This document shows positions 2,667-62,764 of a stretch of 64,000 bases of DNA, piece after piece (the stretch's first letter is position 1; every line of letters begins with the position of its first letter). The notes beneath the pieces were generated by a model. The model saw only the letters and a program-made list of their open reading frames with translations, was not told the origin of the DNA and made no database searches. Source of the DNA: Laetmonice hystrix (taxonomy: Eukaryota); the NCBI GenBank assembly GCA_965235115.1, contig OZ249452.1, positions 19,096,001 to 19,160,000 on the forward strand, in the 5' to 3' direction. The position numbers and the translations under genes were made by a program.

Positions 2667-4450
2667 GGACATGCAAAAAGTTCGAAACTGTACGAAATGT
2701 GGAAAGTTTTAATGGGTCTTTATGAGTTTGGTGGACAGGTTAAAGGAAGAGTTCAGGAGGAAAAAGCATGTGTTTTGTTTGGATCATATTATAAAAGTTA
2801 AAACAGCTGCAGAAAGATATATGCAAAGATTTGTGTTGCCTTTTACCTATCTATAACCATTGCGAAGGAACATTATTTTTTTCATGAACTGAATCAATGT
2901 TTTTAAAAGGAAGTTGAAGCACTTTTGGGGGTAGGCTTTTTATGAAAAAATAAAGCCAGAAACTTTCAGGGGGAGTGAGTGACTTTTGGGGGAAATCTCT
3001 CCCCCATACACAGACCTGGAGCAACCCCTGGCTCAGTCTACAGTTGTTTGTTCTGAGAGAATCATATATCTGGAGCTGCTCCGTCTGCAGAGTCGACGAC
3101 GTAGCGTTCCATTCGATTGTGACGACAATAACGCCAGTTGAGAGCGAGGCTGTAATCAGTCCATATTGATGAATGGTAATTTGTTACGTACGCACGAGAT
3201 TGTTGTCTGAACACCGCCAGAACGTGGCTTGTCACGCGAAGTACCACCCGGCTGTCACTTTTCATTGTAAACGATTGATTTAAACTGCTATGTTCTCGCC
3301 ACTCGCTCTGTGGAGTGCGGTAGATTTTACGGCCCGTTTAGAAGGTTTGAGACCCGAGTGGTGAGAAGATGTACACAGAGAAAGGCTCCACAGTATTGTT
3401 CTCACAGAAAGAGAATCCGCGCAAAGCGGCAACACTCACTTTTGGCTCGTCACCATGGAGATGGGCGGATCGCGTGTCGATCCCAGATTTGTACGTCTTC
3501 AATTTGTGTGGTAATTTATCCTGCTATCCAGGAAGCTTGCGGCACGAAGCATCGCTCATACTTGGCTTGTTTCAGGCGGGCCTTGACAAAGATACACAGA
3601 TCTTCATTTTCTGAAATAGGTCATTGGGTTCGCAATTAGTCCATCGGAACGCTGGTGTCGACAGCAGCCGGAGGCAGCCGACAGAGGTCGCTGTATGAGA
3701 TCGGGTTTGGTGTCCGTAAATACACTTGAAGATCGATCGGTCAGCGATTGCTGGCGCAGTCAGTCTGTGTTTTGTCAGGTGGAGGGGTTTTTTTTTTTCT
3801 TTTCTTGAGAAAGGGAGACAAGTGTGTGTGGAATGAACAGCTGAACCAGGGGTGTGAGGGAGAGAGGGTGTGAATGAGCTCGGGCGTGGGGTAATAATAT
3901 ACAGGGTGGCATCAGAGGTGGTGGGGTGTCTGTAGAGTGTCTGGAGCGTGGCGGCTCCAGCCATGACTGGTCATTGCTGGGAGAAACCCTGAAGAAGTCA
4001 ATATGTAAAGAAAGGGACTCTCCCACACTGGAGACGTCACGCTATCAAACAATTTCCCGTCATGGACGTCACTTATGACCCAGCGTCCAGTCTGAGGTCG
4101 GTGGGATCATCCCATAATGCACTGCCCTGATCGTAGCCTCGTTTTGACGGCTGTAAAAGGGGAAACTGAAAGATGTGAGAGTGTGGATCAGGTGTGTAGT
4201 TAGCTTTTAGGAAAGTATGGGCGCAATGAAATGCCTGCAACCACCGGAGCCGCAAAGCTATGCTACGGGGTCGGGTACATACAGTCTACTCCCCTACCCA
4301 GGAAAAATTCAAAGGAAAGTTCATTTCTCTACATTCTCAGAACACAAATGTACATTTTCCTGGTGTCGAACTATCACATGTGGCCCTGATTTATGTCAAT
4401 TTTGACATCTAAGACATGAAACGTATTCTTTCATATATAACACAGGTTAG

Positions 4451-26441: not shown

Positions 26442-26814
26442 CTTCCCATGATATTTATAAACCACTACATCATGTCGAAGTAAAAGAGAAATAACAACTG
26501 CCTGAGATAATATTCTGTAAAATTTAACTTGGGCTGTATGGCTAAGTTATAGATAGATTGCCTCCGACTCTGTGATAGGTCTCGCCTACTGCTTGACTGG
26601 TAACTGGGACGACACTCAGTCAGTGCGAGTGTGTGACTGTTTCAGCAAGCCTGTCAGTGTCTAAAACATGTAAAACCACAAATACTAGCCTAGTGCTAGT
26701 ACCAGGGCCACGCTACATTTAAACCCTGATTCATTGATGCTACTGCAGTTCATTGCCCCAGGATCGCCAGTCCACTACAACTGAACTGACCACAACAAGA
26801 AAGTCTAATCTTAC

Positions 26815-28655: not shown

Positions 28656-28994
28656 CAGGGTTGGACAAATCCACTAGCCCGAGGTCCGGGACCGACTTGT
28701 GAAAATATATATCATTGGTAGTCCGACGGACTCTTGCCAAGTCGTGGTTAAACGTACTGTCATTGACAGGTGGTATCTGTCAGGACCTGGTGCCAGGCAT
28801 GTAGCAGGTCACAAACCTTCATCCTCCAAGGATGCTGGAGGTCTGTGGCCTGTAATGGCAGTGATGATGGCAATCTTAACATTTCCAAAAACAATTGTGG
28901 AGTTTTGGACCAGTGGACCCAAGTTCAGGACCAGTAAATATTCTGAGTTACTGGTCCTGGACCAGTGACTCGTAAAATAATTTGTCCAACCCTG
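28656..28994. mobile_element. MITE, CAGGG-ended, hAT-like
   Basis: Perfect 15-bp TIR CAGGGTTGGACAAAT; GATTA on both flanks (5-bp TSD); repeated GGACCAG/CTGGTCC internal motifs. Confidence 0.8.
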
Positions 28995-29156
28995 GATTAC
29001 CATACTCACAGTCTGGGTTTTCTTTTCACAGCAGATTCAGGAAGCACTTATTTTTATATTAATTAAATTATATTTCTCCCTGCCCACGTACTACTCCAGT
29101 CATAGCACGACAAAATCAGACACGATATCATTCTGGCAACTTTTGGCAGTTTCTCG

Positions 29157-29404
29157 TCAGTAATAGATTGCTAATGAGGCAAGCGCCATGAATAACAAGT
29201 AACAGAGCCCAACAAATATGATTGGGGGTTTCCCCATCAACATGAACAGTATTTTGAGGTGGCTAATACTGCTCAAATTCTCTGCTGCCTCGTAGATTTC
29301 ATAATAAAGTCTTGGATAAAAACTATGCCTCCCTGCAACATACTTGCTGTATTGTTGCATGTATGGCCTCAGCTGGCAATCCTTCATATAGGATTTTACT
29401 TTTT
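29157..29404 (-). CDS. Death-domain gene terminal exon ending IIFVGLCYLLFMALASLAIYY*
   Basis: ttttttatatgcag|AA AAA GTA...TGA; phase 1 matches the donor at 29574. Confidence 0.65.
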
Positions 29405-31620
29405 CTGCATATAAAAAATAAATTTGTCGTCATGCTATGTAAAGATTCCCACAAAATTCAACAAATCTGACCTCAAACAGACAGGTGGACTGGTTCAAGC
29501 ACATGGCATCCATGAGTTTCTAGATGTCGTAATTAAATGTTATTTATAGAAACATCAGAAGTGACTGACATACTCTCCACCTCAGCTCCTGTAACTCTCG
29601 ACATTGGCAGCACAGACCGTCCACCCGATGTGGTACGGGGACCCAATGTGTTAGGTAGAGACAGACTCGGAGTGTCATGGTCCACATCATCCTGAACGCT
29701 GTCTCTGCCCAGCAGAGTGTGTGCAGATGTGGGGAAGCGTTGGTTCTGCTCTCCCCCCTCTTCCATCTGCTGCTGTCCAGCTTCTGTCCCTTGGGGGGAC
29801 TGTGGATCCCTGGCTTCCATCTGTAGCTCCTGGTCTTCCATCTGCTCCTGGCCTGCTTCAGTTCCTTGGTGGGTGGTGGGTGGAGGGGGCCATGTAATGT
29901 CAAGTCTGCGCACTTGGCGGGTCACCTCATGTAGAGGGGCATCGTCAGGCTGGGAGACAGGGCCACCACGGAGCGATGGACCTGCTCCCTCGGAGCCAAG
30001 TGTAGGGAAACTTGGGTCAGAATACGAGGGACGTACGGGTGAAGCAGTTGCATTATCAATGTTTCCTGCACGACGCTGAAGGGCTTCCAGACCTGAAACT
30101 GAAGAGAGAACATAAAACTTGACAAACCCCAAAACTGAGATATTTTTCTCACCTTTAAATGCCAACTTCAAAGCATTTGATTTAAAAAAATTAATTTTAT
30201 GAGTGTGGGAAACACAACTGTAGGCCTATATAAGCACAAAATTCATGCGCTACAAGACCCACTCAGTTTTTTTATAGGAAGGGGTGGCTCAGCTCTGGAA
30301 CATAAAGTTTACCTTGTCTGACCTTGAGAGCAAGGTCATTCCGCCTGACTTTGATGAGAGCATCTTTAAGTTGATCTTCCATCATGGTTTCAATGTGGCG
30401 AGAACTGTTACGCCAACACAGTAAAAGATTGAAATGGAGGTTTTCATCATGCGGTGCTGGGGCACGAATCCTGTCTAGTTCATCAGCAGAAAGCCCAAGA
30501 TAAATCCCCAACGTGTACCAGTCTCGGCTAAGATGGTATCCTATAGTACACATAATTTCGCCGTGCGTGCTGTTGGCTGTAAATTATAAACCAGACCTTC
30601 AGTGAATTACTACTGAGAGTGAAACATGGGAAACAGCAAACTGATTGATGCCTATATGTAAACAGGGCGACCACCAAAAATTTAATTTTAAACTCCCTGT
30701 TTTCCCTTTGTTTTAAGGATTTTTCCAAATTCCCTGTGCTTTCCCTGCAGGGAATTTATTTTTATAATTTTCCCTGTTTTCCTGGTGTACACAGGGATTA
30801 CAGGATGTTTGACAACCCCACTCACCCATGGGACCAGTGATCATTCGAACTGCACTAATCCCTTTGAACTTTCTGAGCATTATATAATTAAGCTTATTAA
30901 AATAGCCCTAAAAGGTTAGTTGCCCAAAGGACTAGTACCCCTTGTCTTTGCTAAAATTATTTTGTAGTCCCGACATTGTTGCACTTGCCTAAGCAAGTAG
31001 GAGAGTGGGTCTTGCGACCCATATGTGCAGATTGAATTGATTTCAAATGTTTTTTAAAATATGTAATATTATTCAATGGCAATGTTACATTGATCAGTCA
31101 TAATTGGACATTTAAGCATTTGTCGTGAAAACTTCTTTATTGTAAGTGCAAAAATCTACACAAACGTTTGGAGATTTCAATCTAGTGTAGTAGTGAGCTA
31201 AATCCACTCACATCTGTTGATGCAGAAAAGTACTTTTCTCCTTATAAATATCAAAAAGGTTCAAAGAGCTTTACAAATTATAAAACTAGAATTTCGACTG
31301 CGATGTTATCAAACTTTTTTTAATAGTACCACCAGACCCACCTACAGTCATCCGTCCTATTTCTCGGGCTAAATCAATGCGATGCACTTTATTAAGCCCT
31401 TCACGAAGTTTGTTGGTCCATTGGTGATCGTTTCCAGCAAATTTCTTGTTCCACTTGTCAAGCATCAGCCACGGATGATTTGTGGAGTTTCCCTGTAGTT
31501 GCATCAGTAGATTGGCCATGTGTATTGGGGGAAGATCCAAGTAAAGTGCAAGTGGGTAGCTCTCGTCTGTAAGCTGGCCGGCGATTTCCATCAAGAAACT
31601 CTCTTGAAGCACGGGAGATG
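29157..31620 (-). CDS. Tandem death-domain protein with C-terminal transmembrane helix (5' exon unresolved)
   Basis: Four phase-1 exons 31620-31342 (DD1), 30576-30313 (DD2), 30092(or 30098)-29574 (low-complexity linker), 29404-29157 (TM tail) join in frame with canonical sites. Confidence 0.75.
29574..30092 (-). CDS. Death-domain gene linker exon (Pro/Gln/Glu-rich)
   Basis: tttcag|GT CTG...GAG A|gtatgt; 519 nt; an alternative in-frame acceptor lies 6 nt upstream (30098). Confidence 0.72.
30313..30576 (-). CDS. Death domain 2 exon
   Basis: ttacag|CC...CAA G|gtaaac; IGYHLSRDWYTLGIYLGLSADELDRI...LLLCW...LKDALIKVRRNDLA fits the six-helix death-domain pattern. Confidence 0.88.
31342..31620 (-). 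CDS. Death domain 1 exon
   Basis: tttcag|CA...GTA G|gtgggt; LMEIAGQL...LALYLDL...MLDKW...LREGLNKVHRIDLA fits the death-domain pattern. Confidence 0.82.
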
Positions 31621-32448
31621 CTGAAACAGATTGTTGATATTAGGGCTCTCTCATGAATATTATCTTCAATTTATTTTTTTCCTAACCGAATTTTTAGCTC
31701 ATAATTCTAAAATCTTCTTAAATATGTATAGTAAAAACAAACTTTTTTGGCACCTTCTACTTAGGCCTACCAACAAACAGTATAAACACTGGGCATGGGT
31801 CGATTTCGACGGGAGTCTGTGAGTCCAAGACTCCCAAAAATTGGGACGGACTCCTGGTAGCCCCCATGGGTCTAGTTGTCTCCCAGATATTTACAAACAG
31901 ACAGTTTTTAACCCAGGACCCAGTGACGATCTACTACTCAGCAGGGGTCACAACGCTGATATGTTTCAGTTTCACTCAGGACCCCCCCCCCCCCCCCCCT
32001 CCCTTTAAAATCTGGAGGTGAAAGAAATTCATGCGGTCAGAATTCACCAGGAAGCTGGGCCTGAGATAGGCTAGCCCCGGCAACCCCAACCCAAGCAGGA
32101 AGTTTCCAAGTCAAACACCTACTCCACAGTCGGGAAGGTTGTCCGGCCGGCCAGCATCGATCTGGATCCACCTCACGGTTGGGGAGTCCTTGCCAGGCCA
32201 TCACTGGCGTCAGGAGGCGTCAGGAGGCGTCAGAGAGCGTCAGGAGGCGGAGATCATCATGAAAAAGTTGAGGGTTGGAGTTGGTGTATCCACCTTCCGT
32301 GATTCCCGAGTGCGGTCGACAGCCTCGGTCTCCGACTTGGGGGGTTTCCGAATGTCTAAATATAACCATGTTGATCAACCATGGAGCGTCTGCAGCGACC
32401 TCTGGTGGAATTGGGGGAAATAACTGACGCGGTTTGTTTCATACTCAC

Positions 32449-32960
32449 CTGAAAAGCATGAGACAAATAACCCAAGACAACAACACTAAGTCATGGAACC
32501 AAAGAACCAGACAACTGGCAGAACAGATGTGCATGGATATATCAAACCTCCAAACAATGGGAATACACCAAAGAAAAGAGACAATAAGGAGAATGGCGAA
32601 ACAACAAATGGAGGAGAAAATGAAGAACGACGGGAGAAACAAATCTAAGTATATATTCCTAACAACAAACAAGGACGATGGAAAAAGAACACCGGCATAT
32701 ACCTACAGGAACTAACAAGGAATCAAGCAAGTGCAATATTCATGGCAAGAACAAGGATGATAAAGGCCAAAGGAAACTATAAAAACAAATATAATAACCT
32801 ACAATGTAGGGGGTGTGGCCAAGAAGATGAAACTCAACAACACCTTATGGAAACATGCCCAGGAATACACAAAGACGATGAGACAAAAACCCTGATCTCG
32901 CAAATATTCTCGAAAGACATGAACATAGTGCATAAGGCAGCAAAAAACCTAATATGAATT
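32449..32960 (+). mobile_element. 5'-truncated non-LTR retrotransposon (LINE) ORF2 C-terminus
   Basis: ORFs 32434..32715 and 32742..32957 join across one frameshift near 32700 (PAY/LQELTRNQASAIFMARTRM) and end in the CX2CX8HX4C motif CRGC-GQEDETQQ-H-LMET-C. Confidence 0.85.
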
Positions 32961-33165
32961 AATACCCATCTAAATGAATGGGATACAGCGTAGCCCCACC
33001 CCCACAGGGGAACGGGCGTCCCGGCGATCTGGGAAAAACGCACGGAGAAAAGAAAGAAAGAAGGTGGCGCCACGGTTCCCAGGGCTCGCGAGTGTGCGGG
33101 TTTTGAATGAATTGATGCTTTCCAGTTTATATCTTTTTCTTTCCTCGTTGCTTTCATGGACAACG

Positions 33166-38624: not shown

Positions 38625-39030
38625 TCTTTAGGAGAAATACAGAATCTATTTATTCCTTCGTAAGGAAATATTATTAAAGAATGTATCTCCCAGCATCAGT
38701 CCCTTCCTTCATAACTTAAGAAGAAATACAGAATAAATCTATTGGTTCGTAAGGAAATATGATTAAAGAATGTATCTCCCAGCATCAGTCCCTTCCTTCA
38801 TAACTTAAGGAGAAATACAGAATAAATCTATTCGTTCGTAAGGAAATATGATTAAAGAATGTATCTCCCAGCATCAGTCCCTTCCTTCGTAACTTAAGGA
38901 GAAATACAGAATAAATCTATTCGTTCGTAAGGAAATATTGTTAAAGAATGTATCTCCTAGCATCAGTCCCTTCCTTCGTAACTTAAGGAGAAATACAGAA
39001 TAAATCTATTCGTTCGTAAGGAAATATAAA
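38625..39030. repeat. 89-bp tandem repeat, ~4.5 copies
   Basis: AAAGAATGTATCTCC recurs at 38676, 38765, 38854, 38943. Confidence 0.92.
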
Positions 39031-53021: not shown

Positions 53022-53509
53022 AGTAGTACTGCGGTATGGCAGCTATGGCTGATGGTTGGTCCATTGAAGGGCACTGCCAACGATATTAAGAAACACCCAT
53101 GTGTTGAGAAAGATAAAGTAATATGATCGTTTTAAACCATGTAGGCTTCAATCAGATGTCTTCCCATGCAATGTTAGAAGAGACGCTACGACAAAGGCGG
53201 TGAGATAATACACATACATACATTTGTCGTCCATTTCGATCAACACGAAACTCCATTGGGTCATTGGGACGTGGGCATCCGTTCATGAAGTCACGTGCTG
53301 AAGCTGACGTCACAGACTTCATTCAGTGACGTCATAAATAAGGTGGATGTAGGAAATCGCAGGAATTGAGGGCAAGGACGAGATTTTTCATGGAAAAAGG
53401 AGAGATGGGGAGTTAAGAGTGGAAATTGTACGAAGAAAACAGTTTGGGAGAGGGGAAGTAGCTGACCATCTGCTAATGGTGATGAAGAGTTTGGTTTTGT
53501 AAGGAGACG

Positions 53510-55325
53510 GTAAACAAAACCGTACATTTCCGGACTCCTAGCTAGGATGAAGTAAACAAAACCGTACATTTCCGGACTCCTAGCTAGGATGAAGTAAACA
53601 AAACCGTACATTGCCGGACTCCTAGCTAGGATGAAGTAAACAAAACCATACATTTCCGGACTCCCAGCTAAGATGAATTAAATAAAACCGTACATTTCTG
53701 GACTCCTAGCTAGGATGAATTAAACAATACCATACATTTCCGGACTCCTAGCTAGGATGAAGTAAACAAAACCATACATTTCCGGGCTCCTAGCTAGGAT
53801 GAAGTAAACAAAACCATACATTTCCGGACTCCTAGCTAGGATGAAGTAAACAAAACCGTACATTTCTGGACTCCTAGCTAGGATGAAGTAAACAAAACCC
53901 GTACATTTCCGGACTCCTAGCTAGGATGAATTAAACAAAACCATACATTTCCGGACTCCTAGCTAGGATGAATTAAACAAAACCATACATTTCCGGACTC
54001 CTAGCTAGGATGAATTAAACAAAGCCGTACATTTCCGGACTCCTAGCTAGGATGAAGTAAACAAAACCGTACATTTTCGGACTCCTAGCTAGGATGAAGT
54101 AAACAAAACCATACATTTCCGGACTCCCAGCTAGGATGAATTGAACAAACCCGTACATTTCTGGACTCCTAGCTAGGATGAATTAAACAAAACCATACAT
54201 TTCCAGACTCCTAGCTAGGATGAAGTAAACAAAACCATACATTTCCGGACTCCTAGCTAGGATGAAGTAAACAAACCCATACATTTCCGGACTCCTAGCT
54301 AGGATGAAGTAAACAAAACCGTACATTTCCGGACTCCTAGCTAGGATGAATTAAACAAAACCATACATTTCCGGACTCCTAGCTAGGATGAATTAAACAA
54401 AACCATACATTTCCGGACTCCTAGCTAGGATGAAGTAAACAAAACCATACATTTCCGGACTCCTAGCTAGGATGAAGTAAACAAAACCGTACATTTCCGG
54501 ACTCCTAGCTGAAGTAAACAAAACCCGTACATTTCTGGACTCCTAGCTAGGATGAAGTAAACAAAACCGTACATTTCCGGACTCCTAGCTAGGATGAATT
54601 AAACAAACCCATACATTTCCGGACTCCTAGCTAGGATGAAGTAAACAAAACCGTACATTTCCAGACTCCTAGCTAGGATGAAGTAAACAAAACCCGTACA
54701 TTTCCGGACTCCTAGCTAGGATGAATTAAACAAAACCATACATTTCCGGACTCCTAGCTAGGATGAATTAAACAAAACCATACATTTCCGGACTCCTAGC
54801 TAGGATGAATTAAACAAAACCGTACATTTCCGGACTCCTAGCTAGGATGAATTAAACAAAACCATACATTTCCGGACTCCTAGCTAGGATGAAGTAAACA
54901 AACCCATACATTTCCGGACTCCTAGCTAGGATGAAGTAAACAAAACCGTACATTTCCGGACTCCTAGCTAGGATGAATTAAACAAAACCATACATTTCCG
55001 GACTCCTAGCTAGGATGAAGTAAACAAAACCATACATTTCCGGACTCCTAGCTAGGATGAAGTAAACAAAACCGTACATTTCCGGACTCCTAGCTAGGAT
55101 GAAGTAAACAAAACCGTACATTTCCGGACTCCTAGCTAGGATGAAATAAACAAAACCGTACATTTCCAGACTCCTAGCTAGGATGAAGTAAACAAAACCG
55201 TACATTTCCGGACTCCTAGCTAGGATGAAATAAACAAAACCGTACATTTCCGGACTCCTAGCCAGGATGAAGTAAACAAAACCGTACATTTCCGGACTCC
55301 CAGCTAGGATGAAGTAAACAAAACC
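53510..55325. repeat. 42-bp minisatellite, ~43 copies
   Basis: Unit GTAAACAAAACCGTACATTTCCGGACTCCTAGCTAGGATGAA; contains the 12-bp palindrome TCCTAGCTAGGA. Confidence 0.97.
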
Positions 55326-58978: not shown

Positions 58979-59657
58979 GTGGCTGAATTCATTCCATGCT
59001 GGACGAGTTGGTGAATTTACAACCTTGGAAAGAAGCTAAGACTTTATATAATATTTAGTCATCTCTCAGAATGCTTGGGAACATGATTAATCTGTAGTTT
59101 CCCCATGATATTATATGATACATGATATTATTTGATATTATACAGGTAGACTCAGGGAGGGGTGGGGAGGGGGTGATATTACCGGGTATACAGGTAGAGT
59201 CAGGTACGGAGGTAGGCGCTCCCGTATTTTGCCGCCACAGAATGGCCGGGCCGCGGTCCCAGCCGAATACATGTGTACTGACGCCAGTGGAGACGCCTGT
59301 TTGTCTGTCACTCGCCACTCTCCGCTCACAGGTGTGCTTGTCTTTGTAAATAAGCCGAGCCGGTGACAAGGGGGTTATTGGCGGAGAGATACAGCGGACG
59401 GAGATTGCTCTGCTTGGAGAGGGGAGGTGGTTCCGGTCATAAACCACTGTCATATTTCATACAGCGCGGGTGGCGCGGTTAGGCGCTCCCGTATAGGTAG
59501 CAGGCATAGGTAGCAGGAATTGACTTTGAGATAGCTAGCTCTGCTGGGTGGAAATTGGGAGAAAAATGTATTTTTAACTTATCATTCCATTTAATTGAAG
59601 TGTGAATCCCGATCTAAGAGAAGAACGTCGGCTGTGGTAGAAACTGGAACTGCCTCG

Positions 59658-60410
59658 TCACCCCGCCCTGCCAGCTGACCTTCCGCCCCCCCCCACCCCG
59701 CCCCGCCCTGCCAGCTGACCTCCCCCCCCACCCCCGCCCCGCCCTGCCAGCTGACCTTCCGCCCCCCGCCCGCCCTGCCAGCCGCCCCGCCCTGCCAGCT
59801 GACCTTCCGCCCCCCGCCCCGCCCTGCCAGCTGACCTTCCGCCCCCCCCCCGCCCCGCCCTGCCAGCTGACCTTCCGCCCCCCCCCCACCCCGCCCTGCC
59901 AGCTGACCTCACCCCCACCCCCGCCCCGCCCTGCCAGCTGACCTTCCGCCCCCCGCCCCGCCCTGCCAGCCGCCCCGCCCTGCCAGCTGACCTTCCGCCC
60001 CCCGCCCCGCCCTGCCAGCCGCCCCGCCCTGCCAGCTGACCTTCCGCCTCCCCCCCGCCCTGCCAGCTGACCTTTCGCCCCCCGCCCCGCCCTGCCAGCC
60101 GCCCCGCCCTGCCAGCCGCCCCGCCCTGCCAGCTGACCTTCCGCCCCCCCCGCCCCGCCCTGCCAGCTGACCTTCCGCCCCCCCCACCCCGCCCTGCCAG
60201 CTGACCTCCCCCCCACCCCCGCCCCGCCCTGCCAGCTGACCTTCCGCCCCCCCCCCCCGCCCTGCCAGCTGACCTGCCGCCCCCCCCCCCCCCGCCCCGC
60301 CCTGCCAGCTGACCTGCCGCCCCCCCCGCCCGCCCTGCCAGCTGACCTGCCGCCCCCCCCCCCCCCCGCCCCGCCCTGCCAGCCGACCTCTCCCCCCCCC
60401 CCAGCCGACC
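59658..60410. repeat. GC-rich minisatellite (C-tract/GC-box array)
   Basis: Variable ~17-35-bp units CCGCCCCGCCCTGCCAGCTGACCTTCCGCCCC; the G-rich - strand is quadruplex-prone. Confidence 0.93.
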
Positions 60411-61606
60411 GTACTCTGTCACAGGTGGTAGCCCTGAGTTATATAAGATGGCGCCATTACATGACGGCTGGTAAGTGCGGGATGACGCCTATTGTGGCGC
60501 CTGGCGCTACACCATATGGCGCCAACTGTGAATAACTAGTTTAGATGCCATCAATGCTGAGAATGTCAAAGGCGAAATTGATGTTTACAAAGGGGATGCC
60601 ATTTGTCGGATAGGTTGATTGAAAACTGTAAAATAACTTGTTAAGTGTGGAATGGGGGCAGATTGTCATTTCAGGTGTGACAATAGTGCAAATGTGTTTC
60701 AATTCAAAACTTGCATTAAAGTTATTTGTCCACTTAGGAAGCAAGCATGCAGCGATATCTAAAGTTACGAAACCACATAGTTCAAAGAGCATTTCCCTCG
60801 GAAAACCAAGACTCCATTAGATGGCTTCCAAATTTTGTGATCGTAAGGATCCTATACATTTTATTTAATTACGTGAGCAGTTATCAATATCGTTAAATGA
60901 ATCAGCATAACAACGTGGAAATGACAGCGTTTCTGTGGAGTCTGTAACGGTTTCGTCTGACCCACCACGGATGACAACATCCTTGCCTTCATACATTGCC
61001 AGGGCCATGACCGTTACAATGAGTAATGTTATATTTAGATAAAAATGCGGGTATGTTTAGGGAGGAAGCGATAACCTATTCAAACCGGATGTGGGTACAA
61101 TGGGAACGCAGACCGCCCTGCCCTCTGGTGGGCGGATTTTGAACCCGAGGTGAGAGTGAAATGGTACTAAACGGGTAAAGGTTTTTGAGAGCAAAGTGTT
61201 TACTATTTCTAATGCCCTTCATAAAGGTCATCATGTAGTGTAGACATACAGGCAGAGTTGCAGACTCATGGAAAGCCCTGGGGAAAAAATCCGGTTCTCA
61301 TTACTGAAAAATCTTGGGACAGTCGGTAAGACGCCAGGAAACTTCTGGAAATTTCATGAAATGCTGTGATTTGTGAAAATGGTGCTTTGGTCTATAAAAA
61401 GTGTATTCGCGCCATGAGATATAAAAGTTGAAGTCTTAGAAAACTGCACTTTTATCTTGGAAAACGTATCTAATTTTGGTCTGCTCTCCGGTCCGAATGG
61501 AATACTTTAAACTGAGTGTGTTTAGTGGATGCGAGAAGGCTGGACCCGTCTGTGGCACAAACTGGCACTTGGAGTTCGGTCTGTGGAGTCTGTGGCACAA
61601 ACTGGC

Positions 61607-62285
61607 ACTTAGAGTTCGGTCTGTGGAACCTCTGTAGGAACTTGGAGTTCGGTATGTGGAACCTCTGTAAGAACTTGGAGTTCGTCGGTATGTGGAACCT
61701 CTGTAAGAACTTGGAGTTCGTCAGTATGTGGAACCTCTGTAAGAACTTGGAGTTCGTCGGTATGTGGAACCTCTGTAAGAACTTGGAGTTCGTCAGTATG
61801 TGGAACCTCTGTAAGAACTTGGAGTTCGTCGGTATGTGGAACCTCTGTAAGAACTTGGAGTTCGTCAGTATGTGGAACCTCTGTAAGAACTTGGAGTTCG
61901 GTATGTGGAACCTCTGTAAGAACTTGGAGTTCGGTCTGTAGAACCTCTGTAGGAACTTGGAGTTCGGTATGTGGAACCTCTGTAAGAACTTGGAGTTCGT
62001 CGGTATGTGGAACCTCTGTAAGAACTTGGAGTTCGTCAGTATGTGGAACCTCTGTAAGAACTTGGAGTTCGGTATGTGGAACCTCTGTAAGAACTTGGAG
62101 TTCGGTATGTGGAACCTCTGGAAGAACTTGGAGTTCGGTATGTGGAACCTCTGTAAGAACTTGGAGTTCGGTATGTGGAACCTCTGTAAGAACTTGGAGT
62201 TCGGTATGTGGAACCTCTGTAAGAACTTGGAGTTCGGTATGTGGAACCTCTGTAAGAACTTGGAGTTCGGTATGTGGAACCTCTG
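61607..62285. repeat. 33/36-bp minisatellite, ~20 copies
   Basis: Unit GAACTTGGAGTTC(GTC)GGTATGTGGAACCTCTGTAA. Confidence 0.95.
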
Positions 62286-62764
62286 GTGGACAGGCGGCCG
62301 TCTGCCTTGAAAAGAGACGTATGGAAATAGTCGTGCGTATGTGGGGGTTGGGGTGTGAATGGTGATGGGGGTGTGAGAGGGGGTGGGGTGTTTAATCAAG
62401 GGTAGGGATGACGGAGAGGGGAAGGGGGCTCATGGAGGGTTCAACCTGCCGGGGTATGGATCGAGGTTTCGATCAATAGAACGCGGCTAGGGGCTCAGCG
62501 TTTCTGACGTTGAATAATGGGGTTCGGCTAGGGCGTCAGGGGGGTGGGGGTGGTCATGAGGCTCAGGGGAGGGTTGGGGTGAAGGAGCAGGAGGCAGTGG
62601 GTGATGGAGAAAACTGGGGTGTCCATAGCGAGACCAATATCAAAGATTGTCGGGAGACTGTTTGGTTATTGCCAATGGAAACATTCCCATGATATTGGGG
62701 AGGGGGGGGGGTCAACGTTTGGGGTTAGGTATAATGATAGCTTTTTGGTTTTTGCCTCAGAATG

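Follow-up and report, generated by a model that had tools for sequence, protein, structure and literature searches.

Death domains (DDs) build helical type I/II/III oligomers, examples of which are the PIDDosome, the death-inducing signalling complex (DISC) and the Myddosome. In Drosophila Tube, a DD is joined to a disordered C-terminal repeat region, and Tube, as a DD-only adaptor, bridges MyD88 and Pelle. In MAVS, a CARD is followed by a proline-rich region with TRAF-binding motifs and by a C-terminal transmembrane tail anchor. ASC, finally, is a soluble bipartite death-fold adaptor (PMC8891976). A literature search on two-death-domain proteins leads mainly to ASC and to osteoprotegerin. Here, a gene with two DDs in tandem (DD1 and DD2) is analysed in Laetmonice hystrix. 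It lies on the minus strand of a stretch of 64,000 nucleotides, the window (contig OZ249452.1 of assembly GCA_965235115.1, forward-strand positions 19,096,001 to 19,160,000), and all coordinates below are window positions unless another contig is named. With a probability of roughly 0.6, the gene encodes a soluble, presumably cytosolic protein of 395 amino acids, in which the two DDs are followed by a disordered tail and which would act as a DD-only scaffold, adaptor or regulator. A preliminary description of the locus had instead proposed a MAVS-like adaptor, anchored by its C-terminus in an organelle membrane.

The likeness to Tube is one of principle: a soluble, non-enzymatic protein, the DD surfaces of which would bridge other DD proteins, and which carries a low-complexity tail. 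Tube has one DD where the present protein has two, no sequence relationship is detected beyond the DD fold, and in Foldseek the match to the Pelle/Tube DD complex (1d2z) is no more than weak. ASC (PYD-CARD), FADD (DED-DD) and CRADD (CARD-DD) are likewise small soluble proteins with two death folds, which link upstream to downstream oligomers, but they mix two death-fold subfamilies and lack a long tail, whereas here both domains belong to the DD subfamily. What the protein shares with MAVS is a long disordered region behind a death-fold domain; it differs from MAVS in having two DDs and not a CARD, in having no transmembrane segment in the expressed open reading frame (ORF), and in having no TRAF6 motif and one weak TRAF2-like motif.

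Structure and transcription of the gene

Four sequencing runs from one sample are available as assembled contig sets. Three are DNA runs, with sets of 517–600 Mb each, while the set of the fourth run, X4, amounts to 58 Mb. X4 is treated as RNA-like from this small size and from the GT..AG joints in its contigs, although none of the four runs is recorded as RNA. Assembled contigs lose rare variants, and rare isoforms, strand and expression level are not shown by them.

A single X4 contig of 2,074 nt maps to the window in four pieces, which in minus-strand order are 32317–32123, 31620–31342, 30576–30313 and 30098–28762. The three joints between the pieces (32123/31620, 31342/30576 and 30313/30098; a slash marks the boundary here and below) span gaps that read CT..AC on the plus strand and therefore GT..AG on the minus strand, and none of these joints occurs in the three DNA runs at the locus. 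Whole-genome protein searches match this locus and one paralogue only, from which it follows that the spliced X4 form does not derive from a retrocopy. The gene is thus real, transcribed and free-standing, with four exons on the minus strand and with coding sequence (CDS) at 32201–32123, 31620–31342, 30576–30313 and 30098–29536. All its coding junctions are in phase 1. The second piece follows tttcag and ends in ACTGTAG/gtgggt, the third follows ttacag and ends in GACAAG/gtaaac, and the tail exon opens after cttcag. The reconstructed frame of 395 amino acids consists of a leader of 26 residues, DD1, DD2 and a tail of about 188 residues, and it is closed by a TAA stop at 29535–29533, across which the X4 contig is continuous.

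This structure agrees with the preliminary description in part. The phase-1 junction 31342 to 30576, by which the exons of DD1 and DD2 had been joined, is found exactly in the X4 contig. For the next junction, placed at 30313 to 30092, the donor is the one in use, while the acceptor is 30098, which lies 6 nt upstream, keeps the frame and adds Val-Ser. The 5' exon with the start codon, at 32317–32123, had been overlooked.

In that exon, the coding part (32123–32201) begins with the ATG at 32201–32199 and comprises 26 residues and one further base before the donor GTAGGT. The untranslated part (32202–32317, with the contig beginning at 32317) holds an upstream ORF, ATGATGATCTCCGCCTCCTGA, a 10-bp tandem repeat and an in-frame TGA. 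On the reference allele, as on the allele of the RNA-like contig, in which the 10-bp repeat has a deletion, the TGA precedes the ATG, and it follows that the protein starts at the ATG at 32201. The DDs are therefore not the C-terminal end of an ankyrin, NACHT or ROCO protein, a possibility that had been raised: the X4 contig has one exon 5' of DD1, and no ankyrin, NACHT, ROCO or ZU5-UPA part is found upstream.

Some further features of the locus lie outside the CDS. The 10-bp repeat, GGCGTCAGGA, occupies 32206–32249 in 4.4 copies, and both the RNA-like contig and one of the DNA runs show an allele shorter by one unit. A 6-codon upstream ORF, with its start at 32260, is also part of the leader. 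Just upstream of exon 1, at 32449–33062, one contig in each of the DNA runs (3/3) skips 612 bp at a haplotype-like depth of 35–52, while the skipped stretch itself has a repeat-level depth of about 800–2,400, a pattern that suggests a polymorphic insertion of a repeat or transposon. At the other end of the gene, the 3' untranslated region (UTR) extends from 29532 to 28762, that is, over at least 770 nt. Below about 28965 it enters a repeat of very high copy number, with a DNA word depth of about 10,000 over 28700–29099, and the RNA-like contig has a 9-nt insertion at 28892.

The two death domains

DD2 is encoded by exon 3 (30313–30576, about residues 120–207, phase 1 at both ends), which has RNA joints on both sides. 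It matches the Pfam Death family (PF00531) with an E value of 6.2e-06 and 26.7 bits, above the cutoff of 22.6, over profile positions 10–83 of 86. In a protein language model (Atlas), it lies next to DD clusters from molluscs, sponges and echinoderms, with a recognition value of 2707, and when a DD2 profile is compared with PDB sequences, the DDs of ankyrin-3 (E 3e-6) and of PIDD (6e-5) are found.

DD1 is encoded by exon 2 (31342–31620, about residues 28–119, likewise phase 1 at both ends) and is more divergent. The exon alone has no Pfam match at E ≤ 1 and does not reach the gathering score of PF00531, so that of the two DDs in the preliminary description Pfam bears out the second and passes over the first. 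Its relatives, to which we return below, also score under the cutoff of 22.6 bits: 21.2 bits for P0002, a putative orthologous exon, and 20.6 bits for the DD1 of the paralogue. When the window sequence, P0002 and the paralogue are combined in a DD1 profile, hhalign aligns it to the DDs of a four-DD protein of the sea star Patiria miniata with 96.8% probability (E 2.9e-10). Compared with PDB sequences, the same profile finds the DDs of PIDD, ankyrin-G, ankyrin-B and RIPK1 at E values from 4e-5 to 9e-3, with PIDD at 4e-5 and ankyrin-3 at 1.8e-3.

The fold comparison points in the same direction. The AlphaFold2 model of DD1 has six helices and a mean predicted local distance difference test score (pLDDT) of 83 when an alignment of nine sequences is supplied; this run replaced one without an alignment, which gave a poor model (pLDDT 53). 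The best 28 Foldseek matches of the aligned model are all DDs, and the top five, PIDD, FADD, RAIDD, ankyrin-G and RIPK1, have template-modelling (TM) scores of 0.71–0.74. The usual DD core pattern is present in an alignment of DD1, DD2, the paralogue and the orthologue. By profile and fold comparison, then, DD1 is a true, if divergent, DD, despite the missing Pfam match.

For both domains, the best profile and structural matches are the DDs of PIDD1, ankyrin-G and ankyrin-B, i.e., of the ZU5-UPA-DD class (TM score about 0.74). In PIDD1 and the ankyrins, the DD is the C-terminal part of a large protein, in which leucine-rich or ankyrin repeats precede ZU5 and UPA domains, while here DD1 is preceded by 26 residues. 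The DDs of RIPK1, for DD1, and of FADD, for DD2, score only slightly lower, and therefore the matches do not imply orthology to PIDD or to ankyrin.

The two domains have 24% sequence identity to each other, each lies on its own symmetrical phase-1 exon, and they are separated by about 8 residues. When DD1 (31343–31618) and DD2 (30314–30574) are modelled as a complex, the prediction scores 0.66, compared with 0.01 for the best of three controls. Among solved complexes, 51 of 78 score as high as this, and among mismatched pairs 2 of 108 do. At least 96% of the contacts, about 175 in number, recur between runs, and the pLDDT of the partners is at least 86. Such a prediction shows likeness and not binding; it gives a hint that DD1 and DD2 pack as one unit, and they may form an intertwined double domain. 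An extended version of this idea, in which the two DDs would be one intimately packed and possibly intertwined module, pre-assembled so as to nucleate or cap helical assemblies of DDs and marking a lineage-restricted class of DD-DD-tail adaptors, is decidedly doubtful; less likely still is the addition to it that a rare, stress-induced isoform also gains a hydrophobic tail.

The tail and the hydrophobic reading frame downstream of it

The coding part of exon 4 (29536–30098, with the acceptor at 30098 taken from the X4 joint) encodes an acidic, disordered tail of about 188 residues, which ends in VSINNI. It matches no Pfam family, its net charge over the last 185 residues is -14, and its predominant residues are S, P, G, Q, T and E. 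The low-complexity linker with a duplicated motif, which had been described before, is there: QGTEAGQEQME stands at residue 285 and QGTEAGQQQME at residue 310.

What does not follow the tail is a membrane anchor. The 395-residue protein contains no hydrophobic segment, the highest Kyte-Doolittle mean over 19 residues being 1.07, and the expressed ORF has no transmembrane helix within about 30 residues of its C-terminus. The hydrophobic C-terminal exon of the preliminary description corresponds to an ORF at 29157–29404, the part of which at 29157–29387 does end in a very hydrophobic sequence, IIFVGLCYLLFMALASLAI (19-residue mean 2.61). To reach it, a transcript would have to be spliced from 29574 to 29404. 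The X4 contig instead runs unspliced from 30098 to 28762, through the supposed exon, and the depth of X4 is flat at 99.2 over 29100–29899, as expected of one contig only; there is, accordingly, no contig with an alternative junction in X4. Since the contig is unspliced and its frame stops at the TAA at 29535–29533, the hydrophobic ORF is part of the 3' UTR. A transcript that stops there and does not use the exon at 29404 had been named in advance as evidence against a tail anchor, and this is the transcript that X4 contains.

The ORF itself shows little that would mark it as coding. In the genome it matches only itself, it has no Pfam family, and its Atlas recognition is 1347 with no usable match, where 91% of real proteins reach 2300. 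Word-based homologue searches with this ORF and with the DD2 exon return nothing, but the method is length-limited and says little about full-length kin. The GC content of the stretch is 0.40, close to the 0.39 of the 3' UTR, while that of the CDS is 0.52. How often such hydrophobic ends arise can be read from the window itself: of its 305 stop-to-stop ORFs of at least 60 amino acids in six frames, 12 have a 19-residue mean of at least 1.6 within their last 30 residues, and two reach 2.61. Hydrophobic ORF ends of this kind are uncommon, yet they do occur by chance.

Consider, nevertheless, a minor or condition-specific isoform that does splice 29574 to 29404, so that the last 13 residues are exchanged for about 82 that end in a transmembrane helix, and the tandem DDs become a tail-anchored adaptor on an organelle membrane in the manner of MAVS. 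The donor (GAGA/GTATGT) and the acceptor (tttttatatgcag/A) are good-looking sites that keep phase 1, the hydrophobic end is as strong as that of just 2 of the 305 window ORFs, and rare variants are lost from assembled contigs. The X4 contig, however, is unspliced at both sites and is the only one that X4 has there; the ORF has neither paralogue nor homologue nor Pfam family, and its Atlas value of 1347 compares with 2707 for DD2; the ORF of the paralogue's tail exon ends without a hydrophobic segment; and the GC content of the stretch is that of the UTR and not that of the CDS. Such an isoform is extremely unlikely. The MAVS-like membrane adaptor thus fails as a description of the expressed gene, and the free-standing DD-DD-tail protein is left.

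Relatives and proposed role

The paralogue lies on the same chromosome, 4.6 Mb away (C29:14.474 Mb), and has exons for DD1, DD2 and a tail, in a gene model derived from sequence and not from RNA. Its phase-1 junctions are identical to those of the present gene, including the G/CC codon split at the DD1/DD2 boundary. Its tail ORF, of about 100 amino acids, is unrelated in sequence and reaches its stop without a hydrophobic segment.

Outside the genome, relatives are few. An exhaustive HMMER search with DD1 through 1.84 billion representatives gives four matches, two of which are genuine; the other two, P0001 and P0003, are repeat-protein artefacts. One genuine relative is the uncharacterised four-DD protein of Patiria miniata already mentioned (XP_038062333.1, 770 amino acids), which also has tandem DDs in one polypeptide but is only 27% identical and differs in domain number and length. 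The other is P0002, an ORF of 111 amino acids on a 165-kb contig of another assembly, with 37% identity to DD1. About 9.6 kb downstream of P0002, on the same strand, lies a gene for the DNA primase large subunit. The window has a primase-large-subunit-like gene on the minus strand at 26465–23374, about 5 kb downstream of the present gene, with Pfam PF04104 matches on three exon ORFs. From this shared neighbour it follows that P0002 is probably the DD1 exon of a syntenic orthologue, and that the gene would be conserved and yet fast-evolving.

Within the sample, two haplotypes differ in the CDS at five synonymous and five nonsynonymous codons, which is a weak hint of constraint. These counts bear on the possibility that the gene is a young duplicate without function, an exon-shuffled DD-DD cassette that is transcribed while it drifts to a pseudogene. 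In favour of this could be said that there are very few relatives in 1.84 billion representatives, with two of the four matches spurious, that DD1 is under the Pfam threshold, that the tails of the paralogues are unrelated, and that the haplotypes differ at many nonsynonymous sites. However, the ORF runs intact over 395 codons and its splicing is correct, DD1, DD2, the paralogue and the orthologue all keep the DD core pattern, a syntenic orthologue's exon is retained at 37% identity, and the ratio of nonsynonymous to synonymous differences is about 1:1, compared with about 3:1 expected without constraint by our own estimate. A functionless duplicate is therefore very unlikely, and a functional adaptor or regulator is the reading that is followed here. 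The family appears young and fast-evolving, which fits the lineage-specific DD expansions in immunity and cell death of marine invertebrates. To our knowledge, the death-fold signalling proteins of these animals are greatly expanded and reshuffled, and almost none has been characterised.

At least 21 further DD matches at Pfam level occur in the genome. At locus L009 (G000:C6:12882000-12890000, about positions 3112–4083, plus strand), two Pfam Death matches lie about 480 bp apart, at C6:12.885 Mb, downstream of an ORF of 206 amino acids without a Pfam family. A relation of L009 to the present gene is rejected, as tblastn finds no similarity, and an interpretation of the 206-residue ORF as a UPA domain is a guess without Pfam support. 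In the window, blocks of tandem repeats or satellites lie at 38626–39027, 53291–55289, 59614–60422 and 61470–62399; among them are an 89-bp unit in 4.5 copies and long ORFs of the repeated peptides MYGFVYFILARSPE, GRSAGRAG and FLQRFHIPNSK.

By analogy with Tube and with the bipartite adaptors ASC, FADD and CRADD, which come closest in function, the 395-residue protein most likely scaffolds or regulates DD signalling assemblies in the cytosol. Two covalently linked DDs would take neighbouring positions in a helical DD assembly, and they could in this way bridge, nucleate or cap complexes of the animal's other DD proteins, such as FADD, CRADD, PIDD-like and MyD88-like proteins. Sites for docking or regulation would be provided by the disordered tail.

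Several observations weigh against this reading of the gene and of its domains. The RNA support is one assembled contig from one sample, in a run not recorded as RNA. The alignment used to fold DD1 contained canonical DDs, which leans the model toward the DD fold. The predicted DD1:DD2 interface takes in the conserved core positions W56, L53 and L75 of DD1 and W19, L22 and L26 of DD2, and its size far exceeds what a normal DD:DD contact would lead one to expect. An artefact of modelling, over-packing or a recall of solved DD complexes may account for it. The tail was also scanned for TRAF, RHIM, PDZ and caspase sites, with no convincing result: one weak TRAF2-like AGQE and a DDVD, with no TRAF6 motif.

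The last two points lead to a different role for the same protein, in which it is a DD-only decoy or inhibitor that caps or sequesters the DDs of death receptors or adaptors, and dampens signalling instead of transmitting it. The architecture of DDs with a disordered tail includes no effector domain, no effector-recruiting motifs were found by the scan, and the predicted tight packing of DD1 on DD2 could bury the surfaces required for helical growth. On the other hand, an adaptor and an inhibitor would look alike in the present results, and a tail of this length could include recruiting sites that the sequence does not reveal. A decoy is a possible, though unlikely, role, and the broader reading as a DD-only scaffold, adaptor or regulator is retained.

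The gene is, then, an ordinary addition to the known, expanded DD repertoire of invertebrates, in which the shuffling of DD, DED, CARD and TIR domains is well described (PMC2575513), and not a MAVS-like organelle adaptor. With the striking claim of a membrane-anchored platform gone, what is left is a routine extension of that repertoire, and the chief value of the analysis is the corrected gene model. A small, expressed DD-DD protein is at the same time an easy object with which to learn how helical signalling assemblies are nucleated or blocked when DDs are linked. Annelids are reported to have lost APAF-1, to have FADD and CRADD, and to rely on CRADD- and FADD-type activators (PMC11463336); how linked DDs act on such assemblies is a question of relevance to a group of this kind.

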